A DNA stretch of 64,000 nt from Penicillus capitatus. Its lineage: Eukaryota > Plantae > Chlorophyta. The translations under genes and the position numbers were made by a program. Position 1 is the stretch's first letter; every line of letters begins with the position of its first letter. Location of the stretch: positions 124,001 through 188,000 of the forward strand of contig OZ287697.1 of NCBI GenBank assembly GCA_965649825.1, given 5' to 3'. Under the pieces are notes generated by a model, which ran no database searches, was not told the origin of the DNA, and saw only the letters and a program-made list of their open reading frames with translations. Of the stretch, positions 8,093 through 62,224 are shown piece by piece.

Positions 8093-8337
8093 TGTTGTCG
8101 TTCATGCCAAGGTTATTGCCCGGCGAACAGTTGACCTTATAGAGCGGAGCGCTCTGAGAACACGACACGTGTTTTGAAAATGCTGAGGTGTGTGCGTTCG
8201 GCTGTCAGATGATACATCACTTCGTCAACAGCAGCTGAGCTGTTCAAGACAGTATTTATAAAATAAATCCTCTGCGTCAGTCGACACGTGAAACGATATG
8301 TGGGTTGCGATTCTCTGTTCGGCATTGGCTGTGTTGA

Positions 8338-8496
8338 TGTCAAGTTTTGCTTTGTAATTGATTGCGTCGGAAACAGAAACCTTGTTACAAAGAACGTAAA
8401 CAAGAAGTTATTAGATAAACGCGCCTGTCCATTTTATGCATGTGATGTGACAGCGATTATGGTTCAATCTTGGCTCAGTAGAATCTTCTCGCGACA
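8338..8496 (-). repeat. 3' LTR of the gypsy element
   Basis: Identical by eye to 12971-13129, with termini TGTC...GACA. Confidence 0.97.
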
Positions 8497-11442
8497 CGCT
8501 TCCAGCTGCGCTGTTGTCCTTGGAGGAATCCGCCTCAACTGATCATCGTGTACTCGTGATACTATCCCAGATAACATCCCTTCAACTAACCACAAATGAT
8601 CACCAATGGCTTCCATGACGACGCATGGCTCTTCGTCCCACGGGGAAGTAAATAAGCCGATTTGAGCTCTCGCTCTTGGTCTTAAAACCTGATCTCCTAT
8701 CTGAAGCGGTGGTGTGCTCCCGTATTTTCTTTTCTTCATCTCATTTGCGTCTAACTGGGTTTTCCTTGTCCTCTCCTTTGCTTCCTTTATCCAGTTCTCT
8801 TGTATTTCCCGTGTCACTTCCTTTCCATTTCTCGTAACTCCATTTTTTAACTCCGCAGCAGTGTGCAAAGTTGTTTCATTGACTGAATTGTTCATAATCT
8901 TCACTGCCCTTGGCAGAACTCTCTTCCAGTCTTCCGAATTTCCACACATTCGCTTTAACCTTCCCTTTAGGATCCCAATCTGTCGCTCACACAGTCCGTT
9001 CGATTTCGGCATATAGCTTGCAGTAAGCCTTTGCGACACTCCATGCTCTTTGCACCACTCCCTTACACTCCTTGAGTTCCACGTCTGTGCATTGTCCGAG
9101 ATTAGCATTCGGATGTCTCCGTTCTTCTGCCTCCACTTGTCCAATGCTTTTATAGCAGCTTCGCTACTTGGTTTCAAACAGGCCCAAGCCTCAACCCATC
9201 GTGACAGATAATCCACCATGAGTAAGATAAAACGTGGCTCCTCCGATTCACCGGTTGGTAACGGTCCTGCAAAGTCTATTCCAACTGCGTCTCCCACCTT
9301 GTTAGCATCCGTAATTCCTAAAGTTACCCTATGTTGTGACTGCCCCCATACTTGACAAGTCCAGCAATTCTCAACAAATCTTTTAACATCCCTTTCCATT
9401 CCCGTCCAACACCGGCCACCATCTCCCTTCAGATTTAAGATTGTCTTGCGAACTCCCCAGTGACCCATATGCGCCTTGGCTATACGCTTCTGCTGCTCTC
9501 CACAACATCCCTTAACCTCATTTAGCTCCAAATCCTTCCGCTGCGCTAGCATGGGCCATCGGGAGAGACAATCAGCCAGAAAATTATCAGAACCCGGAAG
9601 AAAATGAAGGAAAAGGCGAGAGTCAAGTGGAAAATTTTCCCATAGCCATCCCAAACGGCGTCCAATGCGAAGGTCAGAACGAGACTTGTACCACACATCA
9701 TGTGTGCGTAATTTCTGCAAAGCGCTCAAGGAATCCGAATACAAATGGACTGGGCAGCCAGTGGTAAGAGCAAGTGTATCTTGAAGGCACCAAACGATGG
9801 CATCTAACTCTCCAAGGAATGAACTAACAGGAAAACCACGTATGGCATGAGAGTTAGTGGCAATGAGGCGCCGATCTGAACGGTGTCCTGCGTAAAGAAG
9901 ATAACCAACCCCAGAGCCCGACCAATCTACTTCAATATGAAAAACAGGTGAGGACACACATCGTAAGAAAGCAAGTGAATTGCGTAAGAGATGGGCAGCA
10001 ACAGAGCGAACAGTAGTCTGCACAGAAGACCAATCAATGTGTCGCCGATCAGTCTGTAAAAAGGAGTAAAGGGGAGCAATGGCTAGTCCCAAGCCGGGAC
10101 AGTTCCCTCGACAGGCTGTAAAAATACCCAACATTTTTTGCAAATCCTTCTTCGTTCGCACTATCGGTAGTTGTGTGAGCTGCTTAGAAATGTAATTATG
10201 CTGATGATATTGATCACCCGATATTGAGAAACCCAAAAAATGTACGTGTGGACTACAGAACTGTACTTTTTTCGGATTAACATGGAATCCAGCTGATTGA
10301 AGGGCTGACAAAACGGCCTCAAGGTTACGATCGTGAGATTTCTGATCGCGACCGCCTATAATAATATCATCAAAGTATGCCGTTCCAGGAAGATGTCCCA
10401 GAATGCGGCGGACACGGTCGTTAAAAAAGCCTACACTTGAAGCCCATCCTTGAGGCAGAGTGGCAAAACGGTATCTGCGGCCAAAACACGAAAAACAGAA
10501 AAGACGACTCAAAGAGGGGTCGACCGGGATATGAAAATATCCATCTCGAAGGTCAAGTACCGTAAACAGGCGCCATGAAGGATCAACGGCGCGAACAACT
10601 GTGCGAGTATCAGGTGTGTATGAGTTCCACACTTCGGAGTACTGATTCAGTTTTTGAAAATTAACAACCACCCTGACTCGGCCATCCGGTTTTTTCAAAA
10701 ACACAACTGGGGAAAAGAAACCGCGATCAAAACAGGAAAGCTCTTGAATGATCCCGCGAGAGAGCAATGATCGAAGTTCGGCCTGTGCAGCTTCCATGGA
10801 ACAATCAGTTAAGCACGGCGGTGAACCTGAGTTTGAGAAAGGAACTGATGATTTCCAAACAAGTTCCTCGGCTTTCACAGTAAGGGCACGAAGTGTAGAA
10901 GATGTGGCGTAACTTGAGTTGTTATCAGCAAACAAATAAGGAAAACGAGATTTCCAGACAGAAAAAGAGTTCACTCTCGAATGGACATCTGGGCGCTCAG
11001 ATGAATCAAGAGCATCAGTTATAACCTGAGTAACCAATCTGGGGTCATGCAAAAGTTTACCAGTACCGGAGAAGTTCCCCCGAACAACCTTCAGTTTAGG
11101 CGACAAAGTAACCAAACGATCTGAAAAGTTATGCACTCGAACCGATATCCGTCCATTTTTGCCTAAAATCGGTGTAGCCGACACCTCTCGGAGGAAACAA
11201 CATGAAAAAAGGCCAATAAGTCCGTCTCCGTGTACACTAACAGGCAACATGACCAAACGACTTTCAAGAGGAGTAAGGTAAACAGTTCTTCCCAATCTAA
11301 GAAAAAATGAGCATTGAGAAATGCTCGGTTCTGAACCCTTGACAAGCTGTCGATCAACACGTAGCGTCACGCCAGGCGAAGCGCCATGACCTGGCGGAGC
11401 TAGTTTGACGAAACAGAACGACAGAAAACAACATGCCCATCT
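8464..11442 (-). CDS. pol: Pol ORF: reverse transcriptase, RNase H, integrase
   Basis: LDLRDGYFHIP, LPQGW, YFDDIII, RH (EVDWSG, GELDAI, YSDS, NFLADCLSR), integrase HHCC, GIDFAG, SDNA and NGLCER. The frame is open from 11442 with no ATG before the ORF1 stop. Confidence 0.93.
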   Translation of the reverse strand, partial: RWACCFLSFCFVKLAPPGHGASPGVTLRVDRQLVKGSEPSISQCSFFLRLGRTVYLTPLESRLVMLPVSVHGDGLIGLFSCCFLREVSATPILGKNGRISVRVHNFSDRLVTLSPKLKVVRGNFSGTGKLLHDPRLVTQVITDALDSSERPDVHSRVNSFSVWKSRFPYLFADNNSSYATSSTLRALTVKAEELVWKSSVPFSNSGSPPCLTDCSMEAAQAELRSLLSRGIIQELSCFDRGFFSPVVFLKKPDGRVRVVVNFQKLNQYSEVWNSYTPDTRTVVRAVDPSWRLFTVLDLRDGYFHIPVDPSLSRLFCFSCFGRRYRFATLPQGWASSVGFFNDRVRRILGHLPGTAYFDDIIIGGRDQKSHDRNLEAVLSALQSAGFHVNPKKVQFCSPHVHFLGFSISGDQYHQHNYISKQLTQLPIVRTKKDLQKMLGIFTACRGNCPGLGLAIAPLYSFLQTDRRHIDWSSVQTTVRSVAAHLLRNSLAFLRCVSSPVFHIEVDWSGSGVGYLLYAGHRSDRRLIATNSHAIRGFPVSSFLGELDAIVWCLQDTLALTTGCPVHLYSDSLSALQKLRTHDVWYKSRSDLRIGRRLGWLWENFPLDSRLFLHFLPGSDNFLADCLSRWPMLAQRKDLELNEVKGCCGEQQKRIAKAHMGHWGVRKTILNLKGDGGRCWTGMERDVKRFVENCWTCQVWGQSQHRVTLGITDANKVGDAVGIDFAGPLPTGESEEPRFILLMVDYLSRWVEAWACLKPSSEAAIKALDKWRQKNGDIRMLISDNAQTWNSRSVREWCKEHGVSQRLTASYMPKSNGLCERQIGILKGRLKRMCGNSEDWKRVLPRAVKIMNNSVNETTLHTAAELKNGVTRNGKEVTREIQENWIKEAKERTRKTQLDANEMKKRKYGSTPPLQIGDQVLRPRARAQIGLFTSPWDEEPCVVMEAIGDHLWLVEGMLSGIVSRVHDDQLRRIPPRTTAQLEACREKILLSQD

Positions 11443-12971
11443 TCACCCAACAAACAGTCATTCGAACAATCCACCATAACACCAAAATTCTTTAAAGCAG
11501 AGTAGCCAAGAATCACCTTGTCGGTGGCATCCGTCACATAGTACGGAATAGCCTTGTTCCAGCCCCCAATTCTAGTGGGCAAAGTAACCTCTCCTGTTAC
11601 CTGACTGACTGTGTTGTTGAATCCTCGCAGGCGGGTGTTTTCGAGACGCTTGACCTTTACCCCCCAACGCTGACAATAACTCAGAGGCAGAAGAGAGACT
11701 TCAGCTCCCGTATCCACCAGAGCTTGTTCCTTGTCAGGACGATTTGCAAGGTACATCGCCACCTTTAGAGAAGAATGAGACCGAACAGGATTAACGCGAG
11801 CTGTTTGTTCGACTCTGGGATAATCGATGAACTTGATACTTCCATCCTTCACCGTCCTCTGAGAGTGATTCGGGTTCTTCCGTCCTTTGTCCTGTGGGCG
11901 ATGGTCTTTGATTTGCGCGGCCACATCTTGTTCTTTTGGACCAATTTCAGTAGTCTTCAATCCCACAGAAAGCACTGAAGAGACTTCCTCGCTCTTCTCC
12001 TCGTCAAAAGACGCCAGTGCTTCGAATCGATTGTCCGTGGATACCGGTTGGGCCTCCCGAACCTGGGGATAGCGGTTCCGGCAGAACTTAGCAGAATGTC
12101 CAAATTGTCCACATTGGTAACAATTGCCTTGAAACTGGTTTCTTCCCGGTGGCCTTCTGGTTACTGCCCGTCGCGCCCCACGTTGTTGTCCTTGTGCGCC
12201 ATGGTGGCGCCACTGCCCTAAAATTTCCTCCATGATGCTTGCAAAACGCGGGTTCTTCGCGAGCTCCGCCCTCATTGAATCGCATAGCTCCCTAAGGGGC
12301 AGACCCCTTCCTATGGCATTAACGTTCGCGGAGCTTTCGCCACATTCTACGTCCAGAGCATCGACATCCATCGCGTCTTTGTCAATTTCCGAAGCGGGAG
12401 CTGACCCCATCCAAAACGTCACATTCTTTATCATTAACACCATCTCGGGCATTGTGGTGGTCGTGGGCAAACTCGAAATTGCCCTTCTCAACTGTGCCGG
12501 AAGCTTCTTGAAAAACGTTTTTATCTGCATTTCCCGAGGGAGTCCAGATTGAGCTGCCAAAATGCTGAACCGTTCAGCAAATTGTAGCCATGACTCGTCC
12601 TTTCTCTTCGAGGCTCCAGCTAGTCTCTCTCCAGACGTGGCGCCTGCATTCGAGCACAGGTTAAGGAGTCCCATCTTGAAAACTTTCCATTTTTCCGCGT
12701 CTCCAACCGCAGCCTTGTCCGCGGCGAAACAGTTCATGATTGCGGCCGCTCTTCCGACAAACGCGGCATTGAACATGTCCTTGTCGGCGAAATGGGGTTC
12801 TATGCGGTCAACAACCTGCCGCATCAATTCGAACAGAGGCGACCCGACCTCCACCCTTTCCATAACCTTTCCAACCCTAGCCCTGTAACCGTCTGCCACC
12901 ATGGCAGCGGCGTTAAGAGCCGTCTCCACATCTCCACGGTCCGTCGTCAGAAAACAACGCTCCGAAACCAT
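11400..12971 (-). CDS. gag: Gag-protease ORF
   Basis: CCHC knuckle CYQCGQFGHSAKFC and aspartic protease ALVDTGAEVSLL...VILGYSAL, ending in TAG. Confidence 0.92.
   Translation of the reverse strand: MVSERCFLTTDRGDVETALNAAAMVADGYRARVGKVMERVEVGSPLFELMRQVVDRIEPHFADKDMFNAAFVGRAAAIMNCFAADKAAVGDAEKWKVFKMGLLNLCSNAGATSGERLAGASKRKDESWLQFAERFSILAAQSGLPREMQIKTFFKKLPAQLRRAISSLPTTTTMPEMVLMIKNVTFWMGSAPASEIDKDAMDVDALDVECGESSANVNAIGRGLPLRELCDSMRAELAKNPRFASIMEEILGQWRHHGAQGQQRGARRAVTRRPPGRNQFQGNCYQCGQFGHSAKFCRNRYPQVREAQPVSTDNRFEALASFDEEKSEEVSSVLSVGLKTTEIGPKEQDVAAQIKDHRPQDKGRKNPNHSQRTVKDGSIKFIDYPRVEQTARVNPVRSHSSLKVAMYLANRPDKEQALVDTGAEVSLLPLSYCQRWGVKVKRLENTRLRGFNNTVSQVTGEVTLPTRIGGWNKAIPYYVTDATDKVILGYSALKNFGVMVDCSNDCLLGEDGHVVFCRSVSSN
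12959..12970 (-). promoter_or_regulatory. Primer-binding site TGGTTTCGGAGC
   Basis: Lies immediately inside the 5' LTR, begins TGG, and has 2 mismatches to the classic tRNA-iMet PBS TGGTATCAGAGC. Confidence 0.8.
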
Positions 12972-13129
12972 GTCAAGTTTTGCTTTGTAATTGATTGCGT
13001 CGGAAACAGAAACCTTGTTACAAAGAACGTAAACAAGAAGTTATTAGATAAACGCGCCTGTCCATTTTATGCATGTGATGTGACAGCGATTATGGTTCAA
13101 TCTTGGCTCAGTAGAATCTTCTCGCGACA
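12971..13129 (-). repeat. 5' LTR of the gypsy element
   Basis: Identical to 8338-8496. Confidence 0.97.
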
Positions 13130-15702
13130 GTTGACGTCGCGCTTTCTGTACAGAAGATGGAAATACGACCTGCACAAGATACCTTGTCCTCCAGGACTGC
13201 CAATCTTAGGCCATACGCTTTCGTTGACGCGGGGCGAGGGACTGAGAGATTCTGCAAAATGGGTGGGGAATGCACTGAAGAGATTTGACTACCCGAAGTT
13301 GATGCGGGTGAGCGATTCCTATATCTTCGTCGCCTTTGGAGAAAACGGTCTAGCTGAACATCATGGGCACGTCGGAACTCATCGTGACGGACGACGCCTT
13401 CGTCAAGACGGTGATCCTTTCCTCACAGAATCCGTTCCCGACAGCAGCAAACGGACATTTCGTACTGCCGGTAAGTAAGCAGATATCCAAAAACTGTCTC
13501 CTATTATCGACTGTTTAGACGATTGGAGACGATGTACAAGCAAAGAGCCTTATGTTGAACGCCAAAGTTACACCATATGTGAAGGCGGTTTGAAGGATCT
13601 ACACAGAAGCCGTGCAGTCGTCGAGTCTTAAGGCAGCAATGCCCAGACTTCAGAACGTCATGCGGAGAATGCTTTCAGTTGTCGAGTCCAAAAGAAAAGA
13701 TCGTCCGGTCGAACTTCAGAAGCTGTTCCTAAGTATGACGATGGATGGAATCGGTGCACTGGCTTTCGATGTCAACATGGGCAGTCTGGATGACAGCAGC
13801 GAGTTCCTGAATCTGCTCAGGGCTGCAGCATACATCGGAAGGCAGAGGTTCTCGAATCCCCTGGGCGAAATCTACTGTCGAATCTTCCCGAACTCATCGA
13901 CGGCTCAGCAACGGCGCGAGACCATAGAGAATCTGAATCGCAAGTGGAAGGAACTGACAGACGACATCTTGCAGAGAGAGGCACCGACCACAGGAGAGAA
14001 CCCCGTCTGGTATGGACTGAAGCGTCTGGTGGATCCCGAAACGAAGAAATCCATTCCCTACAACAGACTTCTCTCAGAAGTCGCCACCGTCGTGTTCGCT
14101 GGGACAGAGACAGCTGGACAACAGCTGGCGTGGGTTATGGCTCTCATCGCATCCCGGCCGGACGTGGCGGAGAAGATTGTCAAAGAGATTAATAATCATG
14201 GGCTCTATGGCGAAAACACACGAGAACTGCAGTTTGAAGACTTGGCCAATCTGACTTACCTGACAGCTGTCATTAAAGAAGGAATGAGAGTGGTCTGGGT
14301 GGCTGCAGCCACCTTTCCTCTCATCCTTCCGGAGGATATGACGATTCTGGGATACAGAGTGCCAAAAGGCACTCAGATCACACGCTTTGGACACAGAGCA
14401 TTTCAGGTCGATACCGACTGGAACGATCCAGATTCATTTGACCCGGAAGGAGAGTTCGCAGACGATGATCTTCGCAACAGGTGCAATGTCATGTTCTCAT
14501 CAGGTCCGAGAGATTGTGTCGGCCAGAAACTGGCCATGCTCGAAATGCGCCTTGCCGTCATCTCTCTCTCTTACAGAAGTATAGACTCTCGCTGGTCGGC
14601 ACCATTCAAGATTTGATGGACAACGTTGTTATGAGTGCGGCTGTTGAAGTGGAGGGCGGCATGTGGATTAGCGTCGTGCAAAGGCAGAATCCTTGAGTCT
14701 TCCAATAGCTCTTCATCAATATTGTTTCATTGATTGAGAAAGAGTATTGATTTTCGGATAGAAATGCTCAACACGCAAAACACATTGTCATGAAGTTGAA
14801 GCGCAGGAAGGGAAGAACGTCGCATCGTTACAAGAAGCATGACGAATCATGACTTTATGCTGAGGGAACATGATAAAAGGGGGTTTTTGGAAACATACAT
14901 TCTTTTCAAAGAAAAGAAACTCTTCATCTCAAACATATGTGTGTTAACATGTTATCAATTTTTCCTTTCTACAAGACTCGCGACTCGTTTGGCGAACGCC
15001 GATGTCGGGATGCGACGAACGCATGTCCATCATCGATCCTCATCGGTCTTCGACGACAAGGACAATTCTCTAGATGCCAACACAGCATCTACTGTGAGTT
15101 CAGTTGGAGACGTCGGGCGCCGAGACGGTGAGCGAAGAGACAGGATGGTTGAAGAACAGTCCGATTAATTGCCTCCATTGAGATCGTCACGCAGAGCGAC
15201 ATGACGTTCTGGACCGAAAGCGAATGCTGGACTGATCGCAGTACCCAGTCAGGTAAACCTTTGGTGTATATCATCGCAATCGTCTCGTTTGTATTTGCAA
15301 TGACTAAGCGAGGTGTTCTGGGTCGCCGAAGCCAGCCGTCTTAAATCTAATGAATTTAAATGCAAGACTTCTAGTAGTCCGTGCTAACAAGAATGCGTTC
15401 AGAATTGTTTTTAGCGTGTTTGATGAGCAAAAAGGTGACAGTGACTATCATCTAAGTCAATCTTCAAATGCTTCCTTCCACCATAAACTAGTCTACATGA
15501 TCGCACCAAAAATTGAAATGAACATTTGCCTGTGCATCAAGTTAACATTGATTAAAGCGATCACTTTAGCTTCCGTCCATTAGATCCCAAATCTAGTTAA
15601 ACAATGGAATTTAGCTTTGCGGCAATGTGTGTGTTAGGCAGTGAGTGTGTAGTGATGGTAAGCAATGACAACGCCCGTGATGCCATCCATCAATCGGCAG
15701 CG

Positions 15703-17613: not shown

Positions 17614-19220
17614 ATGTGGACTGCCATCCTCTGTTCTCTGCTCGTCGCACTCGTGACGCGTATCTTCTGGCGCAGATGGAAATACGACCTCCACAAGGTA
17701 CCGAGTCCGCCTGGCTGGCCGATTCTGGGGCATACGCTCGACTTCGTCAACGGCGAAGCGCTCAGAAACATAGCCAAATGGACCGGACACGGTCTCAAGC
17801 ACCTCAACTACCCAAAGCTGATGAGGGTTTGATGCACGCTGTCCATGTCGACAGCTCAAAATTTCGCCGTAGGTTGACGTTTTGGGCAAATCTTTGGTGG
17901 TCGTCACAGACGACGAGTTCATACGAAACACTATGTTGTCCACCAAAGATCCCTTTCCGCGAGTCGCTGGAAAGAGGTCACCTGTGCTTCCGGTGAGCTA
18001 AATGCCAAACACGATGGGATCAAATGATTTTGTGCTTGCAGATGATAGGAAACAATCCAGAAGCAAAATCATTCTTTCTGCATGCTGAGCCGACGCCATA
18101 CGTCAAGGCCGTTCGCCGGATTTACTCCACAGCGTTTCAAACGAACAATTTAAAAGGGTCGATGCCGAAAATCCACAGCGTTATGGGAAAGATGATCTCC
18201 ATCGTCGAGTCTAGAAGAAAAGACGGACCGGTCGAGGTCCAGAAAATGCTCGTCTCTACGACGTTGGACATCATTGGTTCTATCGCATTCGAGATGAATC
18301 TGGGAAATTTGGACAATGATGGAGGAATGCTCGATATCATGTTGGAGACAGCAGCCGTCGCAAGAGAAGCTTTCAGCAATCCACTCAAGACTGTCTACTG
18401 TAAGCACTTTCCGAACTCAGAGGCGGCACGATACACAAGCTCGGTTTTCGAGAAGATGAACAACAAGTGGAAAGAGCTCACAGATGAGATACTGGCCAGA
18501 GACGACCCAGTCAACGGCGAAGAGCCCATCTGGTACGGACTGAAACACCTGAAAGATCCAGAAACAGAGAAGCGCATGGACTACGACGTCCTTCTGGCCG
18601 AAGTGGCGTCTGTAGTGATTTCCGGTACGGACTCCACTGGCCATCAACTAGCATGGATCATTGGTATCTTGGCAAGTCGTCCCGATATCGTTGAAAAGAT
18701 CGTGGACGAATTGAAGCAGTACGGTTTGTACGGAGACACTCAGAAAGAACTGCAGTTTGAAGACTTGTCGAACCTGACCTATCTCAATGCTGTCGTTAGG
18801 GAGGGTATAAGAGTAGCACACGTTTTCCCAGGAAACGCCGTTCGAAGTGTGCCAAGGGACATGAGTATTCTCGGATACAGAATCCCGAAGGGGACGACGA
18901 TTCTGCAAATTGGCAACCGCGCGTACCAAATCGACGCAGACTGGAACGATCCAGAAAGCTTCAAGCCAGAGAGGTGGCTCGATGACGATGCGATCTGCCG
19001 TTCACATAACCTGCAGTTCTCTACTGGCCCCAGAGATTGCCCCGGACAGAGACTTGCAATGCTGGAAATGCGAGTTGCTATTGCGACTATCCTTCAAAGA
19101 TATGAGATCTCCTTGGTCGGATCTTGTGCAGACATAATGAACAATACTGTGACGAGGCTTACCGTCGAAGCTGTGAAAGGGATCTGGATAAACTTTGCGC
19201 CTAGAAAGACTTCTGCTTAG
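17614..19220 (+). CDS. Cytochrome P450 (type B copy 1), intact, 3 exons
   Basis: N-terminal anchor plus PxPPGWP hinge, I-helix SGTDST, ExxR (EGIR), KPERW and heme motif FSTGPRDCPG. Confidence 0.95.
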
Positions 19221-23715: not shown

Positions 23716-25317
23716 ATGTGGACTGCCGTCCTCTGTTCTCTGCTCGTCGCAATCGTGACGCGTGTCCTCTGGCGCAGATGGAGGTACGACCTCCACAAAG
23801 TACCGACGCCGCCTGGCTGGCCAATTCTGGGCCACACCCTCGACTTCGTCAACGGCGAAGCACTCAGAAACACCTCGAAATGGTTTGGACAAGGTCTCAA
23901 GCGCCTCAATTACCCGAAGCTGATGCGGGTGAGATGTTCTGCATACATGACAGCTACATAAGAAGTCGCTGTAGATTAATGTTTTTGGCAAATATTTGCT
24001 AGTGGCCACGGATGACGAGTTCATAAAAAGTTGTATGATGTCCAATAGACATCCCTTTCCTAGAACCGTTGAAAACGAAAGTTTCATTCTTCCGGTGAGC
24101 TCATTTACAGATGGGCCCAAATGATCATGTGTTTACAGATGATAGGCAACAATCCACAAGCGAGATCACTTTTTCTGCATGCTGAAGCAACGCCATACGT
24201 CAAGGCCGTTCGCAGAGTTTACCTAAACGCGTTTCAGTCGAACAATCTGAAGATGGCGCTGCCGAAGATTCAAGACGTCATACGAAAGATGATCTCCGTC
24301 ATCGAATCTGCGAGGGAGGATGGACCGATCGACGTCCAGAAACTGTCCGTATCGGTGACCCTGGACGTCATTGGTTCTATTGCCTTCGACAAGAATCTGG
24401 GCGGTTTGGATGGCCCTGGAGAGATCATCGACCACATCTTGGCAGCTGGATATGTCGCGAGAGAAGCTTATAGCAATCCACTCAAGTCAGTCTACTGTAA
24501 GATCTTTCCACACTCTAAGGCTGGAAAACACCGAAGCTCAGTTCTCGGCAACCTGTACAAAGAGTGGAAACGGCTCGGTGATGAGATACTGGCCCGAGAC
24601 GACCCTGTCAATGGTGAAGAGCCCATCTGGTACGGGCTGAAACATCTGACAGATCCGGAAACGAAGAAACGCGTGGACCACGACGTTCTTTTGGCTGAAG
24701 TTGCGACTGTATTTTTTGGCGGGATGGGCGTTACGGGCCATCAACTCGCATGGATCTATGGTCTATTGGCCTCTCGTCCAGACGTCATCAAAAAGGTCTT
24801 GGACGAGCTGAAAGAGCACGGCCTGTACGGAGACACTCTGAACGATATGCAGTTCGAAGACTTGTCGAAGCTGACCTATCTCAATGCTGTCGTTAAGGAG
24901 GGCATGAGGGTGGCGTGCGTTCTTGTACAAATATTTGGTCGGAGTGTGCCAAGAGACATGAACATTCTCGGATACAGGATCCCGAAGGGGACGACGATTC
25001 TGCAGATTGGCAACCGCGCGTACCAAATCGACGCAGACTGGAACGATCCAGAAAGCTTCAAGCCAGAGAGGTGGCTCAGTGATGACGCGATCTGCCGTTC
25101 ACGCAACGTACAGTTCTCGACAGGCCCAAGAGATTGCCCTGGGCAGAAGTTGGCAATGCTGGAAATGCGAGTTGCCATTGTCGCCATCCTTCAACGTTAT
25201 GAGATCTCATTGGTCGGATCGTATGCAGATTTGGCAGACAATGCGGTGACAGGACTAGCCATCGAAGCTGAGAACGGCATCTGGTTGAATTTTGCGCCGA
25301 GAAAGACTTCCACTTAA
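23716..25317 (+). CDS. Cytochrome P450 (type B copy 2), intact, atypical I-helix
   Basis: Same 3-exon structure, I-helix FFGGMGVTG, EGMR, KPERW and FSTGPRDCPG. Confidence 0.94.
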
Positions 25318-26199: not shown

Positions 26200-26650
26200 C
26201 AGCTATGGCAAACGTCTGCCGATGGGATTAACGGCACCCCTTGTGTGCATGCAGTAGATGTGATCGCACGATTGATGGCCACAACTGAATCTTAATTGGT
26301 GTGGATCTTGTCCGCTATCGCATGTCACCCTCATATCGCCGAGAAAAGTGAAATAACTCAAGGAGCACGAACTCTACGGAAGACTCCCTATGACTTGCAG
26401 TTTCAAGACTTATCATGTTTTACGTACCTCACAGCCATCATCAAGGAGGGAATGCGCGTTGCACATACGGACTGTGCTTCGTTTACATGCCGGGGCATCG
26501 AGAGACATCACATTTCTCGGTATACAGAGTGCCAAAGGGAATTCGCATCTTTTACGTTGGCAATAAATCATTCTAGATCGTTAGGGAGTGGGACGAGTCA
26601 GAAAGTTCCAAGCCTGAGAGATGGTCGGTCGGTGTCTCATTCAATGTGGG
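26200..26650 (+). pseudogene. Decayed P450 fragment
   Basis: LQFQDLSCFTYLTAIIKEGMRVAH, then GYRVPKG and KPERW in shifted frames. No intact heme motif. Confidence 0.8.
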
Positions 26651-26904
26651 GTTTTTACATGGGCTCCGCACAGTGGTATATCACATAGTTCTTGATAAGT
26701 TCAGTAAGGCATCGATAGATTTATGAAAGCTTTTTCGAGATGCAAGAAAGGCATCTATCTAGTCGGGACAGATAATTCAGTGCTAGCGATGGAGGAAAAG
26801 TTTTAGCAAATAATTGCCACTTGCTTCGGTTCGACTCTAGGTGTGGATAGCAAAGATGGTCCCTGGTCTCTTCCATATTTGGCATCTAAAACGATATTGG
26901 TTTG

Positions 26905-48246: not shown

Positions 48247-49847
48247 ATGTGGACGGCATTGCTTTGGTCGCTCGTTACCGTATGGCTTTCGCGCTTTCTG
48301 TGGAGAAGATGGAAATACGACCTGCACAAGATACCTTGTCCTCCCGGACTGCCAATCTTGGGCCACACGCTTTCGTTGACGCGCGGCGAGGGACTGAGAG
48401 ATTGCGCAAGATGGGTGGGTAATGCGCTCAAGAGACTTGACTACCCGAAGTTGATGCGGGTGAGCAATTCTCGAACTCGAGTCGCGTTTAAAGAGAACGG
48501 TTTCAGTTGGACGTCATGGGCACGTCGGAACTCATCGTGACGGACGACGCCTTCGTCAAAACGGTGATCCTTTCCTCTCAGAATCCGTTTCCGATAGGAG
48601 CAAACGGACATTTCATACTGCCGGTACGTAAGCAGATTGAATAACACAGATTCACTCAGAGATCTGTATAGATGATCGGAGACGATGTACAAGCAAAGAG
48701 CCTTATGTTGAACGCCGAAGTCACGCCATATGTGAAGGCGGTTCGTAAGATCTATACAGAAGCCGTGCAGTCGTCGAGTCTTAGGGCAGCAATGCCCAGA
48801 TTTCAGAACGTCATGCGGAGAATGCTTTCCGTCGTCGAGTCCAGAAGAAAAGATCGTCCGGTCGAACTTCAGAAGCTCTTCCTAAGTATGGCGCTGGATG
48901 GAATCGGTGCGCTGGCTTTCGATGTAAACATGGGCAGTCTGGATGACAGCAGCGAGTGCTTTTATCTGCTCAGGGAGGCATCATACATCGGAAGGCAGAG
49001 GTTCTCGAATCCCTTGGGTGAAATCTACTGTAGAATGTTCCCGAAGTCGGCGACAGCTCTGCATCAGCATAAGACCATAGAGAATCTGAATAGCAAGTGG
49101 AAGGAACTGACGGACGACATCTTGCAGAGAGAGGCACCGACCACAGGAGAGAACCCCATTTGGTATGGACTGCAGCGTCTGGTGGATCCCGAAACGAAGA
49201 AACCCATTCCCTACAACAGACTTCTCTCAGAAGTCGCTACGGTCGTACTTACCGGGATGGAGACTATTGGACATCAGCTGGCGTGGATCTTGGCCATCAT
49301 CGCATCCAGATCCGACGTGGCGGAAAAGATTGTCAAAGAGCTGGACAAACATGGGCTCTATGGCGAAAACGCACGAGAACTGCAGTTTGAAGACTTGGCC
49401 AATCTGACTTACCTGACAGCTGTCATTAAAGAAGGAATGAGAGTGGTCTGGATGGATGCCGCCTCATTTCCTCGCATCGTTCCAGAAGATATGACGATTC
49501 TGGGATACAGAGTGCCAAAAGGCACTCAGATCACACGATTTGGACACAGAGCATTTCAGGTCGATACCGACTGGAACGACCCAAATTCATTTGATCCAGA
49601 AGCAGAGTTCGCAGACGATGATCTTCGCAACAGGTGCAATGTCATGTTCTCATCGGGTCCGAGAGATTGTGTCGGCCAGAAGCTGGCCATGCTCGAAATG
49701 CGCCTTGCCATCATCTCTCTCTTGCAGAAGTATAGACTCTCGCTGGTTGGTACTGTTCAAGATTTGATGGACAACGTTCTCACAAGCGGAGCCGTTGAAG
49801 TGAAAGGCGGTATATGGATCAACGTGGTGCCAAGGGAGAATCTTTGA
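48247..49847 (+). CDS. Cytochrome P450 (type A copy 3), intact
   Basis: 3 exons, TGMETI, EGMR, FDPEAEF, FSSGPRDCVG. The only undisrupted type A copy. Confidence 0.94.
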
Positions 49848-50730: not shown

Positions 50731-52336
50731 TCAAAAAACACGTCTTTCCATGCGCAATCGAATCCCGTTATGAGACGCCATCACTGTTCCATTGACGATT
50801 TTCGAAAAATGCGATTCAAACGAAGAATCCTTTTCACTCCATTGGAAAGAGTATTTTGAAACAAGAATAGCAACGATCCAACGCATGAGACTCATTGCAT
50901 ATCTCTGGCCGATGCAATCTCGTGGCCCGAGAGAGAATGGAACGTAATACTTCTGAGACATATCTTCGCCAGATAGCCACCTCTCAGGTATGAAATCTTC
51001 AGGTGCACTCCAATCTCCATTATGCCGCATCATTGTGTGACTTGGCAGAAAGAATTGTGTCCCCTTCGGCACGCGATACCCAAGGACATCGATATCCTTA
51101 TCCGTGCATTTCCTCAGAATGAAGATAGCGGTGTGTGCCAAGCGCATGGACTCTTTTATCACTGCCGTCATGTACTCCAAAGAGGCAAGATCGGCGAAGG
51201 CCACTTCTCGAGCCTCCGGTCCACAGAGTCCATGGCACTTCAGCTCATCGACAATTTTATCCGTCACTCGTGGATAGGTGGCCAAAAGAGCAAAGGTCCA
51301 TCCGAGTGTGTGTCCTAGATTGTCCACCCCGCCGTAGACGAGAGTGGCGATCTCGCCTTTCATCAACTCCACAGATATTAGATCGTCCGTCTCGGGATCG
51401 CGGACATTCTTAAGTGCTCTCCATATTCTCGCCTCGCCGTTTTCCGTATCCGATCGCTTTCGAATCTCGACAGCGATTTTGCGCCAGAGACACATGAGGT
51501 CGTCGAAATCCGATTGGATCTTGCGACAACGAGGCATCCATGGTAGAAATTTCATCTGCATCTTGAGGAGCGGACTCAGTGAGATGTCTCGGAAGTGTCT
51601 GCCACCGGTAACGATGCATTCGTAATACGGTTTTGTGCGATCCAGAGCGCCAAAGTCGAAATCAAAGGCGAAGGCGCCGAGGTTATCGAGGACTGTCCGC
51701 TTGAAAAGAGATTCGACATCGATCGGCCCTCTCTCGCGCTCCCGCTCCACAACCTTCACCATGTTCATGAGTACTTTCCGCACAGATGGCGCCGCCGCTT
51801 CGAGCGCCACGGAGTTCATGCAAGGACTTAGTGCACGACGCATAGCTTTGACATATGGCGTCACTTTGGGGACTGCCACAAAGGCGAGTTTGCCTGGGAC
51901 ATCTGTCAAGATCTAGAAACACGTCCTCGTGCCTTTCCCACACAAGTGCGATCATACGAGCTTGGAATCTTCGGAAAAGCCCGGCGCCTTTGGCATCTCA
52001 TCGCGTTTCGAAAGTATCACATCTCGCGAGAAAGCCGTGTCCAGCACAACGAGGTAGGTCTTGCTGCCAAGCAGAAGCTGCGCCACAAGGTTTATCACTT
52101 CCGTCTGTCAAAGAAGAGACACATACGCGGATGACTTTGGGATTGCCGAGGTCTTGACGCCACTTATTAATAGTTGCATACATCGGCGTGTTGGATTCTT
52201 TGATGAAATGCAGCGCGTGACCCAGGAATGGCAGACGAGGCGGTGTAGGGATCTTGTGCAGATCGTAATTCCATCGCACCCACAGCCACGTCGTCACTTT
52301 CCAGGCAACGAACGCCGCAAGCACGTAGAGCCACAT
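50731..52336 (-). CDS. Cytochrome P450 (divergent copy C), intact
   Basis: MWLYVLAAFVAWK...RWNYDLHKIPTPP, same intron positions as the other copies, I-helix YGGVDNLG, ESMR, IPERW, FSLGPRDCIG. Confidence 0.94.
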
Positions 52337-54508: not shown

Positions 54509-56384
54509 TCAAACCAGACATCCCGCTTCGTCGCCTGACGATGGCTCAGACTTTGTCGGCACGGTACCACGTGGCACAAATTCCCCATAGCGTTGCATCT
54601 TTTTGCGAAAAGACCGATTGCGAGAGAAGGCGCCTTCGATGGGTATTCCTTCTTCCATGCAATCGCGAATGGCATCGGCCAAGTCTTTGTCTGCTGCTGT
54701 ACACAGACAGGTCACTTTTCCAGGACGACCCAGTCGACCAGTGCGGCCCACCCGATGCACAAAGGCGATCGCACTGGGGGCGAAGTCCGCTTGGATCACG
54801 TGTTCAATCTCTTGAATGTCCATGCCACGCGACATCCCATCGGTACATACCATCACCACACCTTCCTCCTTGCGGAATCGTTGCAGATTGGCCGTGCGGT
54901 AGACGCCGCCGAGTTTCTTGTGATAAGGAATGCAGGTCAGATTGTGCTGTATGAGGAAATTGCAGATGTCTTTGACGCGGGGCACATCGTTGGCAAAGAC
55001 GAGAATTTTGCCGCGGACGTCGGATTCGAACGCGGCATCTTGTTCGATGGCATCGAGCAACGCGTCTTGCCGCTGATCTGGCTCAATCTCGATCCAATTG
55101 CAGTCCAGTCGCGTCGACGTCTTGTGCAAATTGGCCGTCGAGATGACCTGCGCCGCTGGGAAGATTTTGCTAATTTCGCTTCGAACGTTTTTCGTTCCGA
55201 GAGACGAAATCGTCGATCCAGCTAAAATGATCTGCCTTCTCCAAAACGGCCGTCCAGTGGAAGGCGTCAGCTGCTTCGTAGGAGAGTGGTACCCCGCTTC
55301 GATCATGGCACTCAAGCCGCCACGCAGTCCTGCCTTTCGGATATGTTGTGGCAGCAATGCAAAGTCTTCTCGTGTTATCCCCAACTCCTCCGCGAGATTA
55401 GGCTCAGCAACGGCTAGTTCGCATTTATGAAGCATCTGAGAGAGCGTTTAGATTTTGGCATCGATCATCAGGAGAGAAGTTAACCTGAAGGAGACGATCG
55501 AGTTGCAATCGATAGGAACCTGTCAGCATCAAGTCTGCCTCGTCCACGACAATATACCCCACTCTGTCGAGAATCGGCGATCTCCACGCTTTGTGCATGT
55601 CCTTGATCGCGACCAAGATGCTCCCAGGAGTGCCGAGAAGGACATCTGGCCGCTGCGTATACCGTGACAGACCGCCAGGAGAGATTTCCGTTTTGATCGG
55701 TGCCGCATCGGAAGAGAGCAAATGGATCATAGACTGAACTTGAAGGCAGAGATCGGCACAGGGACACAGGATCCAAGCATATCGACGCTGATTCCTAGAA
55801 TCCGTGCCTCTCCTGAGAGTACACCCCCTGCATGCGTTCCTCACTTGAGCAGATGACTCCTGTGATGGAACGGCTCTTCATCTTCCAATGCATCTGCCTT
55901 CGGCGATGTGACAGGTGTTGATGGGTTCTCCTTCAGCTGCTGCTTATCATGCAAGATATGGGTGAGGAGGGGGAGGAGATATGCCAATGTCTTGCCGCTT
56001 CCCGTTTCGGCTGCCAATACGACATCCTCTCCCGTCATCAACGATGGTATACCCGATGCCTAACGAAGGGACACCAAAAGCACAGTGACAAGTAGACCAT
56101 AGGGAAATCACTTGGATCTGGGTGGGCCGTTGGATGTCATTTCGAAAGAGACTATCAAGGAGATGTCGATTCAGACCGAATCCCTCAAACGATGGTGCAT
56201 TCTTGGCGAAGACCCCATCGGCGATGTCCGCTTTGGATTTACGCCTCTCGACGTTAGGTCGCGTGGCGTTGCGCCGCCAGGTGAAGCGCGCCGCGTTGCC
56301 CCATAAACGCCGGAGAGCAGTCGGATGACGATAAAGAGAAGACGTCCGCATCATCCGCGTCGCATGGAAGGCGTTTTCGTTCAT
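54509..56384 (-). CDS. DEAD-box RNA helicase, plastid RH22-like
   Basis: Q motif (FEGFGL...PTQIQ), AETGSGKT, TPG, DEAD, SRGMD, HRVGRTGR and C-terminal AFSRNRSFRKK. Start at 56384 or 56354. Confidence 0.92.
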
Positions 56385-60336: not shown

Positions 60337-60589
60337 AGATGGACGACTCAAAATGAGAATCGCGTTCAATTTTTTCTTGTTTTCGTGACATGCAAGTATT
60401 GTTAAACGCAGTATTTGAACATTGAATGTTTTTAATCAGTCGACAATGCTGTTGTTTGCAAATTGCGTAAGAAAAAATGTTTGCGGCACTTCAGCACAAG
60501 AATCGTTGAATAAAGTATTTGAAGCAAAAACGCCCGGCGTTTGCTAAAGGTGAACCGAAAGAAAATCAAAAAGAATTCCACGATTTGCA

Positions 60590-62224
60590 TCACGCATCCG
60601 CATGAATAAACAAATGAGATTCCCTGGGTGTCACATTCACCCGTATGCCGTGTTTCGCCTCGATCACAAGGCCAGTGACGGCACTGTCGGCAAGTTCCCG
60701 GTAACTGCCGATCAGTTGAAGCTCGTATCTCTTCACGAGGGCGATGATGGTGAGGCGCATCTGGAACATCGCCAGTTTTTGTCCGGGGCAATCCCTCGGA
60801 CCCGTCGAGAACATCATGTTCTCTTTGTAACAGGAAGGACGATCGGTCAACCACTTCTCCGGAGCGAAGGTCGACGGATCTTCCCAATCGGCGTCACTGT
60901 TAAAAGCTCGATTCCCGATGCGCATGATGCGTGTCCCTCTGGGAACTCTGTACCCGAGAATCGTCATGTCACGTGGGACGGTTCGAGCAAAGCTCGCAGA
61001 GCTGACGTGGGCCACTCTCATGCCTTCCATGATGACTGCTGTGAGGTAACGCAGCTCAAACAGATCCTCGAACTGCAGGTCTCTTGCTTCGGGTCCAAAC
61101 AGTCCGTGTTCGGCCAGTTCTTTCAGGATCTTGTCGACCACGTCGGGGCGATCGGCCAGGAGGGCCAAGATCCAGGCCAGCTGGTTTCCTGTCGTGTCCA
61201 TTCCCCCGACAACGACGGTAGCCACCTCCTTAAACATCGCCGAAGCAGAGATCGGCATTTTCGTCACGGGATCCACCAAGTTTCTGAGTTTGTACCAAAA
61301 GGGCTCTTCGCCTGCCTCTGGGTCTTCTCGGTCGATGATTGTGTTCGTCAAGGACTTCCATTCGTTCACCAGTTTGAAATACACGTCAAAATTTTTTTGT
61401 GCCTGTTGGCACTTCGGGAAGAGGTAGCAGTAAAGGGCCTGGAGAGGATTGGCCATGACTCTGCGAATCACTTCACCCATCTCGATGGCAATGTCATGAA
61501 ATTTACGACTGCGATCCAAACCGCCCAGATTGGTATCAAAGGCCACAGTGCCAATGACATCGATCGTCAGACGGTTGCACAGATTCTGAAAATCTATCGG
61601 GCCATCGAGTCTTTCGGATTCGATAATGTCTGTCATTGTCTGAATGACATCTGATAGCTTTGACATGGCTGTTTTTAGATGACTCGACTGAAACGACGTC
61701 GCGTAGATGCGACGGACGGCCTTGACGTGGGGTGATAACCCTGCGCTAAACAGGAGGCACTTTTCTTTGAGTTCGTCTCTCAAAAACTAGAACACTCGTA
61801 TGATCGCGAGAGCAAAAGTTACCGAATCTGACTTACCGGTAGAATGACTCCTCCATCGATGACAAGCTTCGGAAACGGCTCTGTCGGCGACATCATGACC
61901 GTCTTGATAAAATCGTCGTCTGTCACGACGAGCATCGTCTTACCCATGACATCAAACTAAACAAGCCGTCCGGGTTTCTTCTGCCACTGCGTTCGAGAGT
62001 GATGTATGTACCTTCATGAGCTTCGGGTAGTTCAATTCTTCGAGGGCGTGACCGACCCAACGCGTGATGTTGTCGCCGGCGCGACCCGTCATGAAGTCCA
62101 AAGCATTTCCAAGCAACGGAAGTCCGCGCGGCGAGGGTATTTTGTGTAGGTCATATTTCCATCTTTTCGGCAGCTGACGCAGCAACAGCGCGAGGAGAAG
62201 GAGACAGAGAATCTCGGTAAGCAT
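60590..62224 (-). CDS. Cytochrome P450 (copy D), intact
   Basis: MLTEILCLLLLALLL...RWKYDLHKIPSP, same introns as the other copies, GGMDTT, EGMR, APEKW, FSTGPRDCPG. Confidence 0.95.

Follow-up and report, generated by a model that had tools for sequence, protein, structure and literature searches.

A tandem supercluster of at least 21 cytochrome P450 genes in the green alga Penicillus capitatus

Background

Why would a green alga carry a long run of related cytochrome P450 genes, and do the differences among them reflect diversification of function or the decay of redundant copies? Green algal CYPomes are usually small, with a few dozen genes. P450 blooms in animals and plants include the human CYP3A and CYP2C clusters, insect CYP6 and CYP4, and plant CYP71 and CYP76, and variation among their members is concentrated in Gotoh's substrate-recognition sites (SRSs). 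The window analyzed here is the whole 64,000-nucleotide stretch of Penicillus capitatus DNA at positions 124,001 to 188,000 of contig OZ287697.1 (assembly GCA_965649825.1). An earlier reading of its letters, here called the original prediction, had proposed a ten-member P450 array with hypervariable active-site segments, forming a candidate algal specialized-metabolite locus.

Results

Extent of the array

The tandem P450 array is genuine, and its genes encode membrane-anchored oxidases. Searches with tblastn and motif scans find nine P450 genes of full length and a single relic fragment in the window, which are numbered c1 to c10 in order of position. The span given in the original prediction, 8298-62224, is correct: c1 has its true ATG at 8298, and the ATG of c10 lies at 62224. 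Its count of ten describes the nine genes and fragment within the window and understates the whole array, which is twice as large. On the public metagenome contig ERZ25074695:ctg340516, at least 21 full-length copies are spread along about 170 kb (~0.959 to 1.128 Mb), and this 1.46-Mb contig is 99.3-99.8% identical to the window outside c1. The window thus holds about half of a P450 supercluster of at least 21 genes.

We rejected the possibility that the copies stem from an assembly artefact or from haplotig collapse. They differ from one another by 8-60%, an independent haplotig matches the window at 100% identity along the 8.8 kb that was compared, and the match to the 1.46-Mb contig likewise opposes this explanation. 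Scans of the window for tRNAs, Rfam families and tandem repeats gave no matches.

Gene structure and P450 signatures

A single gene model fits all nine full-length copies. It comprises three exons and two phase-0 GT-AG introns, with lengths of 210-216 nt (exon 1), 46-55 nt (first intron), 117-120 nt (exon 2), 43-50 nt (second intron) and ~1.18 kb (exon 3). The spliced proteins align end to end with full-length homologs from metatranscriptomes (for example, P0011). The gene model and motif scan recover the shared anchor, hinge and two intron positions of the original prediction in every full-length copy. The N-terminus reads MWTA(I/V/L)L..., continues through about 20 hydrophobic residues and then enters RRWKYDLHKxPxPPG; the hinge pattern RW.YD..K.P.P is present in 9/9 copies. 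The predicted signal-anchor helix, the basic and proline-rich hinge and the lack of an organellar transit peptide suggest proteins of the microsomal (ER, class II) type.

The P450 profile PF00067 matches c2 with an E-value of 1.9e-58 (residues 30-470) and c9 with 2e-56. An AF2 model of c2 (pLDDT 84.8, pTM 0.86) has the canonical helix order and an N-terminal helix at residues 2-23, and Foldseek matches this model with probability 1.00 and TM scores of 0.7-0.85 to CYP3A5, BM3, CYP46A1 and CYP97C1. The cysteine-ligand loop FS(S/T/L/Y)GPRDC(V/P/I)G occurs in all nine full-length copies, and ExxR is invariant across copies.

Other signatures vary. The PERF position is PER(W) or PEK(W) in c2, c3, c6, c7, c9 and c10, and is PEGEF or PEAEF, without the arginine, in group A (c1, c5 and c8). 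The I-helix motif (A/G)Gx(D/E)T(T/S) is canonical or near-canonical in seven copies and atypical in two, with c3 having GGMGVT, without the acid and threonine, and c9 having GGVDNL, without the threonine. All nine I-helix hexamers and six post-ExxR strings quoted in the original prediction were recovered exactly. Judged by these residues, catalysis may be atypical or impaired in some "intact" copies, namely those of group A, in which the PERF arginine is missing, and c3 and c9, which are without a canonical acid-alcohol pair.

The copies

Six of the nine full-length copies in the window are intact (c2, c3, c7, c8, c9 and c10), and three are broken (c1, c5 and c6). Identity to c2 ranges from 34 to 72% among the remaining copies.

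The first gene, c1, is a group A pseudogene on the forward strand that is split by a retrotransposon. The first 40 nt of its exon 1 (MWVAILCSALAVL...; 8298..8337, forward) are severed from the remainder (13135..14698, forward), which has a TGA at codon 135 and a 2-bp insertion (TC) that shifts the frame near the 3' end. A motif scan places its I-helix sequence AGTETA at 14098-14115 (forward). Joining 8298-8337 to the sequence from 13135 onward restores the anchor and hinge, and the other haplotype (L003) has exactly that uninterrupted sequence. The intervening element (8338..13129, reverse strand) is an LTR retrotransposon with a Ty3/gypsy-type domain set; its reading frames encode RVT_1, rve, Integrase_H2C2 and gag aspartyl protease domains. 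Its LTRs (8338-8496 and 12971-13129) are 100% identical and have TG..CA ends, and the target-site duplication GTTGA lies at 8333-8337 and 13130-13134. The insertion site is empty on the other haplotype of the same sample (an ENA contig), and no second copy of the element was found in the fetched loci.

Four copies on the forward strand belong to group B. The genes c2 (17614..19220; I-helix SGTDST at 18621-18638, cysteine motif at 19017-19046), c3 (23716..25317; I-helix at 24718-24735) and c7 (40890..42491) are intact and encode 503 amino acids each. The unusual hexamer of c3 also is present on the other haplotype. The fourth, c6 (33842..35442), is broken in this haplotype by a TAG at codon 232. 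We considered an alternative nuclear code in which TAG and TAA specify glutamine, as in some Ulvophyceae, such that this stop would become a sense codon. This was rejected, as TAA, TAG and TGA each terminate paralogs at homologous positions.

The remaining group A copies, also on the forward strand, are c5 (29288..30887), a pseudogene that has lost 1 bp after ...PRIVPE and whose sequence recurs identically on the independent haplotig ctg322903_27x_l, and c8 (48247..49847), an intact gene of 501 codons with PEAEF at the PERF position (49596-49610). The relic c4 (26260..26678, forward) is frameshifted, covers about residues 302-445 of the family (from the I helix to the cysteine loop) and is ~43% identical to any copy.

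The two copies on the reverse strand both are intact. The most divergent copy, c9 (50731..52336, 503 amino acids), clusters with g332 and g8395 of Caulerpa lentillifera. The last copy in the window, c10 (60590..62224, 509 amino acids), is the first of a same-strand run that continues with c11-c13 beyond the window end. An exact look-up of the c10 reading frame returned no record, and an allele of c10 was found via L006.

Homologs and family placement

The original prediction placed the locus in an alga, which agrees with three observations: a chloroplast-type KAS I gene adjoins the array (72% identity to Caulerpa and 70-71% to Tetraselmis and Tetradesmus), the nearest named relatives are green algae, and the nearest named homologs of the P450s are all from Bryopsidales. 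Members of the P450 family are present in Caulerpa, Bryopsis and Ostreobium, at 30-35% identity to the window copies, and the closest matches among annotated algal proteins are P450s that bear no family name and are recorded as "hypothetical". Homologs at 90% identity or more are all genomic contigs.

The best phmmer match is CYP46A1 (6e-27), and identity to the best solved or named P450s is 17-26%. The copies stay below the >40% identity to a member of CYP46, CYP3, CYP4, CYP97 or CYP102 that the Nelson rule sets for membership of those families. A profile search of 1.84 billion representatives grades into generic P450s after about 20 matches, and many of the later matches are fused arthropod CYP4-type predictions, such that the search does not delimit the family edge or the clan.

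A literature search on P450s of Bryopsidales and on P450s of siphonaxanthin biosynthesis found nothing specific besides the C. lentillifera genome paper. That paper lists 32 "strigolactone biosynthesis MAX" homologs, including g332, g333 and g8395, and describes tandem duplication and lineage-specific expansion of these homologs (g322-g326, g332-g336 and others) (Arimoto et al. 2019, DNA Res; PMC6476727). Expansion of the family in Caulerpa was therefore already known.

Duplication, gene conversion and loss

Self-BLAST of the window reveals repeated blocks of gene plus spacer, in agreement with the local duplication that had been proposed. Paralogs are of several ages: dS is 0.15-0.25 among the copies of group A, 0.35-0.57 among those of group B, and saturated between the groups. 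Haplotypes also differ. On the ENA contig, the c1 allele is intact, encodes 501 amino acids and is 8% different from c1 of the window, and the c6 allele has a lysine at codon 232 and is intact. Nonsense mutations, frameshifts and a retrotransposon insertion are eliminating copies, and such lesions are still polymorphic between the haplotypes.

A related species (ERZ26696514) has a syntenic, smaller array beside the same helicase and ZUO1/ankyrin anchors. Some genes are 1:1 orthologs between the two species, and both species have lineage-specific duplicates; no 1:1 orthologs of groups A and B were found in the fetched loci of the related species. Birth-and-death, the mode of evolution originally proposed, finds expression in the several ages of the paralogs, the haplotype-polymorphic pseudogenes and the copy-number differences at this syntenic locus, and the description of the array as a birth-and-death P450 bloom is supported.

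The original prediction made no mention of gene conversion, which is an important part of the dynamics; hence, the process is not pure birth-and-death. The c1 allele of the other haplotype is a mosaic, in which a tract of about 300 bp matches c5 at 100% identity and the I-helix region is c8-like, and trees made from different partitions are mutually discordant. The paralogs therefore exchange tracts by gene conversion.

Selection at substrate-recognition sites

Purifying selection dominates, with gene-wide omega (NG86) of 0.26-0.36, or about 0.3. Pooled regional values are 0.58 for SRS1, 0.54 for SRS3, 0.86 for SRS5 and 0.54 for SRS6, compared with 0.35 for the non-SRS framework, and no region has omega above 1. 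At the protein level, the substrate-contact segments change at about twice the framework rate, chiefly in SRS1 (the B-C loop), SRS5 (the strand after ExxR), SRS3 and SRS6. Outside the SRSs, the hydrophobic anchor has a pN/pS of 0.8.

The original prediction had singled out the I-helix and the segment after ExxR as hypervariable. Both short segments exceed the framework value of 0.35 in pN/pS (0.63 for the I-helix hexamer and 0.85 for the post-ExxR octamer), but neither is above 1, and the term overstates their variability. SRS4, the I-helix SRS, is as a whole no more variable than the framework (0.33 versus 0.35), and the main hotspot lies outside the I-helix.

Codon site models were fitted with in-house code that reports NEB posteriors. 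M1a assigns 30% of codons to omega = 1, and SRSs have more than their share of such codons (53/99 versus 98/404, p = 4e-8). The excess of non-synonymous change at SRSs, whose absence the original prediction had named as evidence against itself, is thus present, with an odds ratio for the neutral class of 3-3.6 (p ~1e-6 to 4e-8). Comparison of M2a with M1a on the full 14-sequence tree of the window species is not significant (LRT 0.67, p = 0.71), so we make no claim of family-wide positive selection. The same comparison in the 11-sequence B clade gives an LRT of 19.6 (p = 5.5e-5), with about 2% of codons at omega near 4. The candidate sites are 91, 106, 123, 256, 374 and 375, of which 106, 123, 374 and 375 are in SRS1 or SRS5. 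Gene conversion is known to inflate codon site tests. When partition-specific trees are used, p-values are 0.005 for the N-terminal third, 0.07, and 0.09 for the SRS5 partition, and only the N-terminal third stays significant. The signal of positive selection at a few SRS codons of one subclade is therefore only partly robust to recombination.

Neighboring genes

The genes found around the P450s encode KAS I, FAST-like, ThiF, DEAD-box helicase, ankyrin, DnaJ/ZUO1 and TPR proteins, along with retroelement proteins. The DEAD-box helicase gene (54509..55844, reverse strand, in partial reading frames) interrupts the array between c9 and c10 without belonging to it, and serves as a synteny anchor shared with the related species. 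A Pfam scan of the window's reading frames, spacers and flanks detected neither a scaffold-former nor any other tailoring enzyme, and the precomputed domain calls for the matching contig, which cover about 190 kb, also include none. The locus therefore does not have the three or more biosynthetic enzyme classes, including a scaffold-former, by which plant-type clusters are recognized. To call it a specialized-metabolite or defense locus is a guess.

Discussion

We favor, with a probability of roughly 0.7, the interpretation that this locus is about half of a green algal supercluster whose ER-anchored class II P450s, at least 21 in number, are diversifying in function and have their nearest named family relatives in Bryopsidales. 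The family grew by tandem and segmental duplication, with paralogs swapping tracts by conversion and copies being lost through lesions. Individual copies might act on distinct but related small lipophilic substrates, or might oxidize the same ones at different positions. If so, the array would be a diversifying oxidation toolkit for endogenous specialized metabolites or foreign compounds, and the enzymes would presumably receive electrons from an NADPH-P450 reductase that is encoded elsewhere.

A rival proposal, which we regard as possible but doubtful, is that the array is a detoxification battery similar to the CYP2, CYP3 and CYP4 clusters of animals, oxidizing foreign compounds (for example, allelochemicals of microbes or competitors, or pollutants) and not building the alga's own metabolites. 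The closest solved structures by both sequence and fold are CYP46A1, CYP3A4/5/7 and BM3, and the profile search beyond the algal family reaches arthropod CYP4-type proteins. However, identity to those animal enzymes is only 17-23%, and such values for solved P450s justify no inference about substrate. The lack of clustered biosynthetic partner genes would suit a detoxification role, as would the presence/absence polymorphism and rapid turnover, which are typical of such batteries, but no observation here separates detoxification from biosynthesis.

It is also conceivable, although unlikely, that the copies are redundant duplicates drifting neutrally. The SRS loops would then vary because they are the least constrained part of the structure, and most copies would be interchangeable and on their way to becoming pseudogenes. 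Such drift would explain why every regional omega is below 1, why 30% of codons fit omega = 1, why M2a is not significant on the full tree, and why the anchor, outside the SRSs, also reaches a pN/pS of 0.8. Three of nine copies and the relic are dead in this haplotype, and loss-of-function alleles segregate, which also would be expected. Yet most copies have held omega at about 0.3 and retained every catalytic motif across dS values of 0.2-0.6 and higher, deep subclades keep 1:1 orthologs in the related species, and the site test is significant in the B clade, with candidate sites clustered in SRS1 and SRS5. These observations argue against simple drift.

Functional diversification could be taken further. 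Perhaps the supercluster is an oxidative tailoring toolkit for defense or signaling lipids of the Bryopsidales type, such as caulerpenyne-like terpenoids or carotenoid-derived compounds. Conversion would then move whole SRS segments between paralogs, shuffling them as modules, as the c1 allele with its c8-type I-helix and c5-type N-terminal half might illustrate, and populations would keep functional and null alleles of each copy as a balanced chemotype polymorphism. We consider this elaboration speculative and improbable.

A long shot of another kind is that the genes encode MAX1/CYP711-like enzymes of carotenoid-derived (strigolactone-like) signaling that have diversified in siphonous green algae. 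It stems from the closest named homologs of the array, g332, g333 and g8395, being listed as strigolactone MAX homologs (PMC6476727). However, that assignment is a grouping at the level of orthogroups or BLAST and is not functional, no carotenoid cleavage dioxygenase or other pathway gene is near the array, and a family of 20-30 genes is hard to square with a single hormone step.

Lastly, an incidentally duplicated housekeeping family (a sterol, carotenoid or fatty-acid hydroxylase) is very improbable: a chloroplast KAS I gene adjoins the array and the P450 clan includes fatty-acid and sterol hydroxylases, but the Caulerpa, Bryopsis and Ostreobium members are only 30-35% identical, copy number varies widely among taxa and even between haplotypes, and groups A and B have no 1:1 orthologs in the fetched related-species loci.

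Siphonous green algae produce notable defense terpenoids and unusual carotenoids, and to our knowledge no biosynthetic P450 has been identified for either. A large P450 family with fast turnover that is restricted to these algae is an obvious pool of candidates for such enzymes. The locus also offers intact and null alleles of one gene in one sample, natural conversion chimeras and an orthologous array in a sister species. It is otherwise a textbook P450 bloom, and its chief value is as an annotated resource.

Comparison with known systems

The closest known relatives of the array are the MAX1-like genes of Caulerpa, which belong to the same family. The proteins g332, g333 and g8395 are the best named matches (34-35% identity), and the Caulerpa genes share the RW(K/H)YDLHKIP hinge and the tandem arrangement. 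The host is a different alga, however, and groups A and B and the c10 type are clades without a Caulerpa counterpart, with only c9 joining Caulerpa genes. The Caulerpa paper contains no analysis of SRSs, selection, pseudogenes or gene conversion (PMC6476727), features that are described here for the window array.

The closest solved structures, those of CYP46A1, CYP3A4/5/7 and CYP102 (BM3), share with the array the fold (TM 0.7-0.85), a cysteine loop of the PRxCxG type and the helix order, whereas their sequence identity to the array, 17-23%, is far under the 40% family threshold.

Plant clusters such as those for thalianol, avenacin and momilactone resemble the array in having several P450 genes side by side. 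In contrast to the array, which consists of P450 paralogs only, among unrelated genes, these clusters combine a scaffold-former with varied classes of tailoring enzymes.

The nearest parallel in mode of evolution is with the P450 blooms of animals and plants, which are marked by tandem duplication, pseudogenes, copy-number polymorphism, conversion, a conserved framework with faster change in SRSs, and gene-wide omega of about 0.3. The same features were measured in this array, although its host is a green alga and its family lies outside the named animal and plant families. Duplication, conversion, loss and extra change at the substrate-contact loops are the ordinary route of P450 family expansion.

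The P450 array and its gene model

Nine full-length P450 genes and one fragment, numbered c1 to c10 along the window, are found between positions 8298 and 62224 by tblastn with one long ORF and by a six-frame motif scan. Position 8298, where the original prediction began, is the exact start of c1. A single gene model fits all nine full-length copies, and comprises three exons and two phase-0, GT-AG introns. Exon 1 (210-216 nt) codes for the anchor, hinge and A helix, and is followed by intron 1 (46-55 nt), exon 2 (117-120 nt), intron 2 (43-50 nt) and an exon 3 of ~1.18 kb. Because full-length metatranscriptome homologs of related organisms (P0011, P0017, P0019 and others) can be aligned with the spliced proteins from one end to the other, at 45-50% identity, the splice sites are validated. 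The proteins match PF00067 (Pfam, E 1e-56 to 1e-58), and all nine have the RW.YD..K.P.P hinge, an ExxR motif and the FSxGPRDCxG Cys loop. The fragment, c4 (26260-26678), is an old relic reaching from the I helix to the Cys loop, with ~43% identity to any copy. Six copies are intact (c2, c3, c7, c8, c9 and c10), the number predicted, and the predicted I-helix hexamers and post-ExxR strings were found again letter for letter.

Although the ten predicted members are all in the window, the array is larger, with at least 21 full-length genes in ~170 kb. It runs on past the window edge, and more intact copies with the same two introns, placed via loci fetched around other family members, occur on the 1,457,751-bp ENA metagenome contig ERZ25074695:ctg340516_41x_l (41x) at ~0.959, 0.970, 0.976, 0.988, 0.994, 0.999, 1.001, 1.003, 1.012, 1.019 and 1.021 Mb, with one at 1.127 Mb. 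Ankyrin, DnaJ/ZUO1, DEAD-box helicase, 3-oxoacyl-ACP synthase I (KAS I) and FAST-like genes are interspersed. Family matches at E <1e-50 are also found on seven contigs besides this one and that of a related species, species B.

Some copies depart from P450 consensus motifs. Group A (c1, c5 and c8) has PE(G/A)EF, as PEGEF or PEAEF, where P450s normally read PERF/W (14443-14457 in c1, 30636-30650 in c5, 49596-49610 in c8), so that even intact c8 lacks the E-R-R triad's meander arginine. The c3 I-helix hexamer GGMGVT (24718-24735), the same in both haplotypes, lacks both members of the oxygen-activation pair, the acid and the Thr, and that of c9, GGVDNL (51333-51316), lacks the Thr. The two genes show no other damage, and omega for c3 versus c6 is ~0.26. 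These motifs suggest that the chemistry of some copies may be atypical, or their activity reduced.

Haplotypes and broken copies

With c1 excluded, identity between the window and ctg340516_41x_l is 99.3-99.8%, and the 8.8 kb compared with ctg322903_27x_l, a 25-kb, 27x haplotig of the same metagenome sample, match it at 100% (window positions 25746-34534). Sample ERZ25074695 therefore contains two haplotypes or strains of the alga. Alleles other than c1 have 0-11 nucleotide differences between haplotypes, and when the c2, c3, c6 and c7 pairs are pooled, 8 changes are non-synonymous (the c6 stop/Lys difference among them) and 12 are synonymous.

Three full-length copies are broken in the window. 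Exon 1 of c1 is split after its first 40 nt by a 4,792-bp LTR retrotransposon (8338-13129) with 100% identical 159-bp LTRs and TG..CA ends, flanked by the 5-bp target-site duplication GTTGA (8333-8337 and 13130-13134). The element looks intact, with two long ORFs that encode a 523-aa gag-protease (gag aspartyl protease) and a 968-aa RT-integrase; a search of related loci, ~190 kb in all, revealed no other copy. Because the other haplotype of the same sample has an empty site on ctg340516_41x_l, with only one GTTGA, the insertion is very recent and polymorphic. Further lesions in c1 are a TGA stop (codon 135) and a TC microsatellite that has slipped by +2 bp; c5 has a 1-bp deletion, and codon 232 of c6 is TAG. 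Because TAA, TAG and TGA each end paralogs at homologous positions, the standard code applies and the c1 and c6 stops are real. On ctg340516_41x_l, c1 is intact (501 aa) and c6 has Lys in place of the stop, so of the three "pseudogenes", at least two are segregating null alleles.

Other insertions were also observed. A separate, unrelated RT/integrase retroelement lies between c13 and c12, two copies in the continuation of the array past the window end (locus L006, 4159-6294). In the other haplotype, 1.9 kb of extra sequence is inserted at window position ~37392 (locus L002, 4170-6074); it has internal direct terminal repeats (88 and 138 bp) and is LTR-like or TRIM-like. Around this spot the window itself (36411-37646) has two pairs of diverged inverted repeats with 74-76% identity, and no Pfam domain was found there.

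Duplication, gene conversion and synteny

The history of the array is one of birth-and-death evolution in which old subfamilies have been retained. In a neighbour-joining tree, the window contains four deep lineages, namely group A, group B (c2, c3, c6 and c7), c10 and c9, the last being the only window copy that groups with Caulerpa genes. Values of dS are 0.15-0.25 within A and 0.35-0.57 within B, and are saturated between groups. Self-BLAST reveals duplicated blocks of gene plus spacer, for example 13137-17117 with 29330-33230, and 28655-30920 with 47614-49880.

The two c1 alleles (window 13135-14698 and locus L003 of the other haplotype, 5110-6677) differ by 8%, whereas their flanks differ by 0.5-2%. 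Site patterns reveal that the intact allele is a mosaic: its first 165 nt are c1-like, alignment positions ~400-700 are 100% identical to c5, the I-helix segment (994-1049) is c8-like, with TGMETA instead of AGTETA, and c1-like sequence recurs beyond it. A chimeric assembly is a less likely source of this pattern than interlocus gene conversion, to which the site patterns point. Trees of group B made from three thirds of the gene are also mutually discordant. Given this discordance and the c1 mosaic, whole SRS-bearing segments (SRS, substrate-recognition site) appear to move between paralogs.

Species B has a syntenic P450 array on a 4.08-Mb contig (ERZ26696514:ctg303836), which is bounded, as here, by ZUO1/ankyrin anchors on one side and a DEAD-box helicase on the other. 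The helicase is at 54509-55844 (minus strand) in the window, between c9 and c10, and at 19811-21059 of the species-B locus (L010), at the end of its P450 run, and so serves as a synteny anchor for comparing the arrays. The corresponding interval has at least 7 copies in species B versus at least 12 here. Some are 1:1 orthologs (species-B copy L10ii with s1000k, L10iii with s1003k, L10iv with c13, and L10v with c10 and c12). Each species also has duplicates specific to its lineage, and a frameshift breaks one of the species-B copies. The predicted birth-and-death diversification is supported, and is extended by the larger array, the polymorphic null alleles, gene conversion and the syntenic array.

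Selection at substrate-recognition sites

Six SRSs were placed on c2 from AF2 secondary structure. Gene-wide omega within groups is 0.26-0.36 (Nei-Gojobori). Pooled pN/pS is 0.58 for SRS1 (residues 96-129), 0.37 for SRS2 (214-224), 0.54 for SRS3 (236-247), 0.33 for SRS4 (296-312), 0.86 for SRS5 (369-381) and 0.54 for SRS6 (479-490), versus 0.35 for the non-SRS framework; a 15-codon sliding window peaks at ~1.0-1.1 at residues 91-110. Both segments emphasized in the original prediction are more variable than the framework, the post-ExxR octamer at 0.85 and the I-helix hexamer alone at 0.63, but the I helix, with SRS4 at 0.33, is not the main hotspot.

Goldman-Yang site models, in our own implementation, give an M0 omega of 0.29, and M1a assigns omega 0.16 to 70% of codons and omega 1 to 30%. 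M2a gives no improvement over M1a with 14 sequences (LRT 0.67). In the 11-sequence B clade it is preferred (LRT 19.6, p = 5.5e-5) and assigns omega ~3.7 to 1.8% of codons; sites with posterior >0.8 are 91, 106, 123, 256, 374 and 375, four of the six being in SRS1 or SRS5. With partition-specific trees, the M2a signal is significant only for residues 1-170 (p = 0.005); in the two remaining thirds it is no more than marginal (p = 0.07 and 0.09). An excess of non-synonymous change at SRSs, set beforehand as the test of the prediction, is present; neutral-class codons are commoner there (53 of 99, versus 98 of 404 elsewhere; odds ratio three to four, p = 4e-8). The case for positive selection is suggestive rather than firm.

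Neighbouring genes and possible function

The KAS I gene beside the array is of the chloroplast type; its best named match is from Caulerpa lentillifera (72%), followed by Tetraselmis and Tetradesmus (70-71%). Its exon-ORF (3304-4716, minus strand) overlaps a FAST-kinase-like ORF (4340-6295, plus strand) by ~380 bp. The PF00109 match starts at residue 159 of the KAS ORF, and the N-terminal ~150 residues, which have no ketoacyl-synthase Pfam match, are probably non-coding. A ThiF-family (E1-like) ORF lies near the window start (1510-1977, plus strand), and a 247-aa ORF with no Pfam match (7074-7817, minus strand) is also called in the other haplotype, with length and position unchanged.

Genes for terpene synthases, PKSs, methyltransferases, acyltransferases or CCDs were not found in the window or in ~190 kb of contig with domain calls, so the locus is an array of paralogs rather than a multi-enzyme biosynthetic cluster. 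Its predicted role as a specialised-metabolite locus is unproven. Transcripts of these particular copies were not found among the sequence-search matches. The array consists of complete, mostly constrained, ER-type P450 genes in rapid turnover. The copies probably oxidize various small lipophilic molecules that are related to one another, and the B-C loop and post-ExxR strand would be where their specificity is tuned. The substrates may equally be specialised metabolites that the alga makes itself, signals derived from carotenoids, or foreign compounds. As a pool of candidate genes for Bryopsidales chemistry, the array has moderate interest.

Relatives and known P450 systems

All named relatives belong to the Bryopsidales: Caulerpa g332 and g333, which are adjacent genes, and g8395 (34-35% identity); BSKO_11119, BSKO_09050/09054/09055 and BSKO_06422 of Bryopsis sp. 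KO-2023; and CAD7698929 of Ostreobium quekettii. The KYDLHK hinge is present in recognizable form in the Caulerpa and Ostreobium proteins, BSKO_11119 and BSKO_09055, and is more degenerate in BSKO_06422. The next tier comprises uncharacterized P450s of Chlamydomonas, Coccomyxa, Dunaliella, Botryococcus and Myrmecia, and the KYDLHK hinge is absent from those examined. The closest solved structures are CYP46A1 (E 6e-27), CYP3A4/5/7, BM3 and CYP97C1, at 17-23% identity, and by the 40% rule the array P450s fit no named CYP family. In the Caulerpa genome paper, g332, g333 and g8395 are among 32 "strigolactone MAX" P450 homologs, described as tandem duplicates in a lineage-specific expansion (PMC6476727), so P450 expansion is already on record, at the level of a supplementary figure, for a relative. 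The array is a P450 bloom of a well-known kind, in a family whose expansion had been noted before in Caulerpa.
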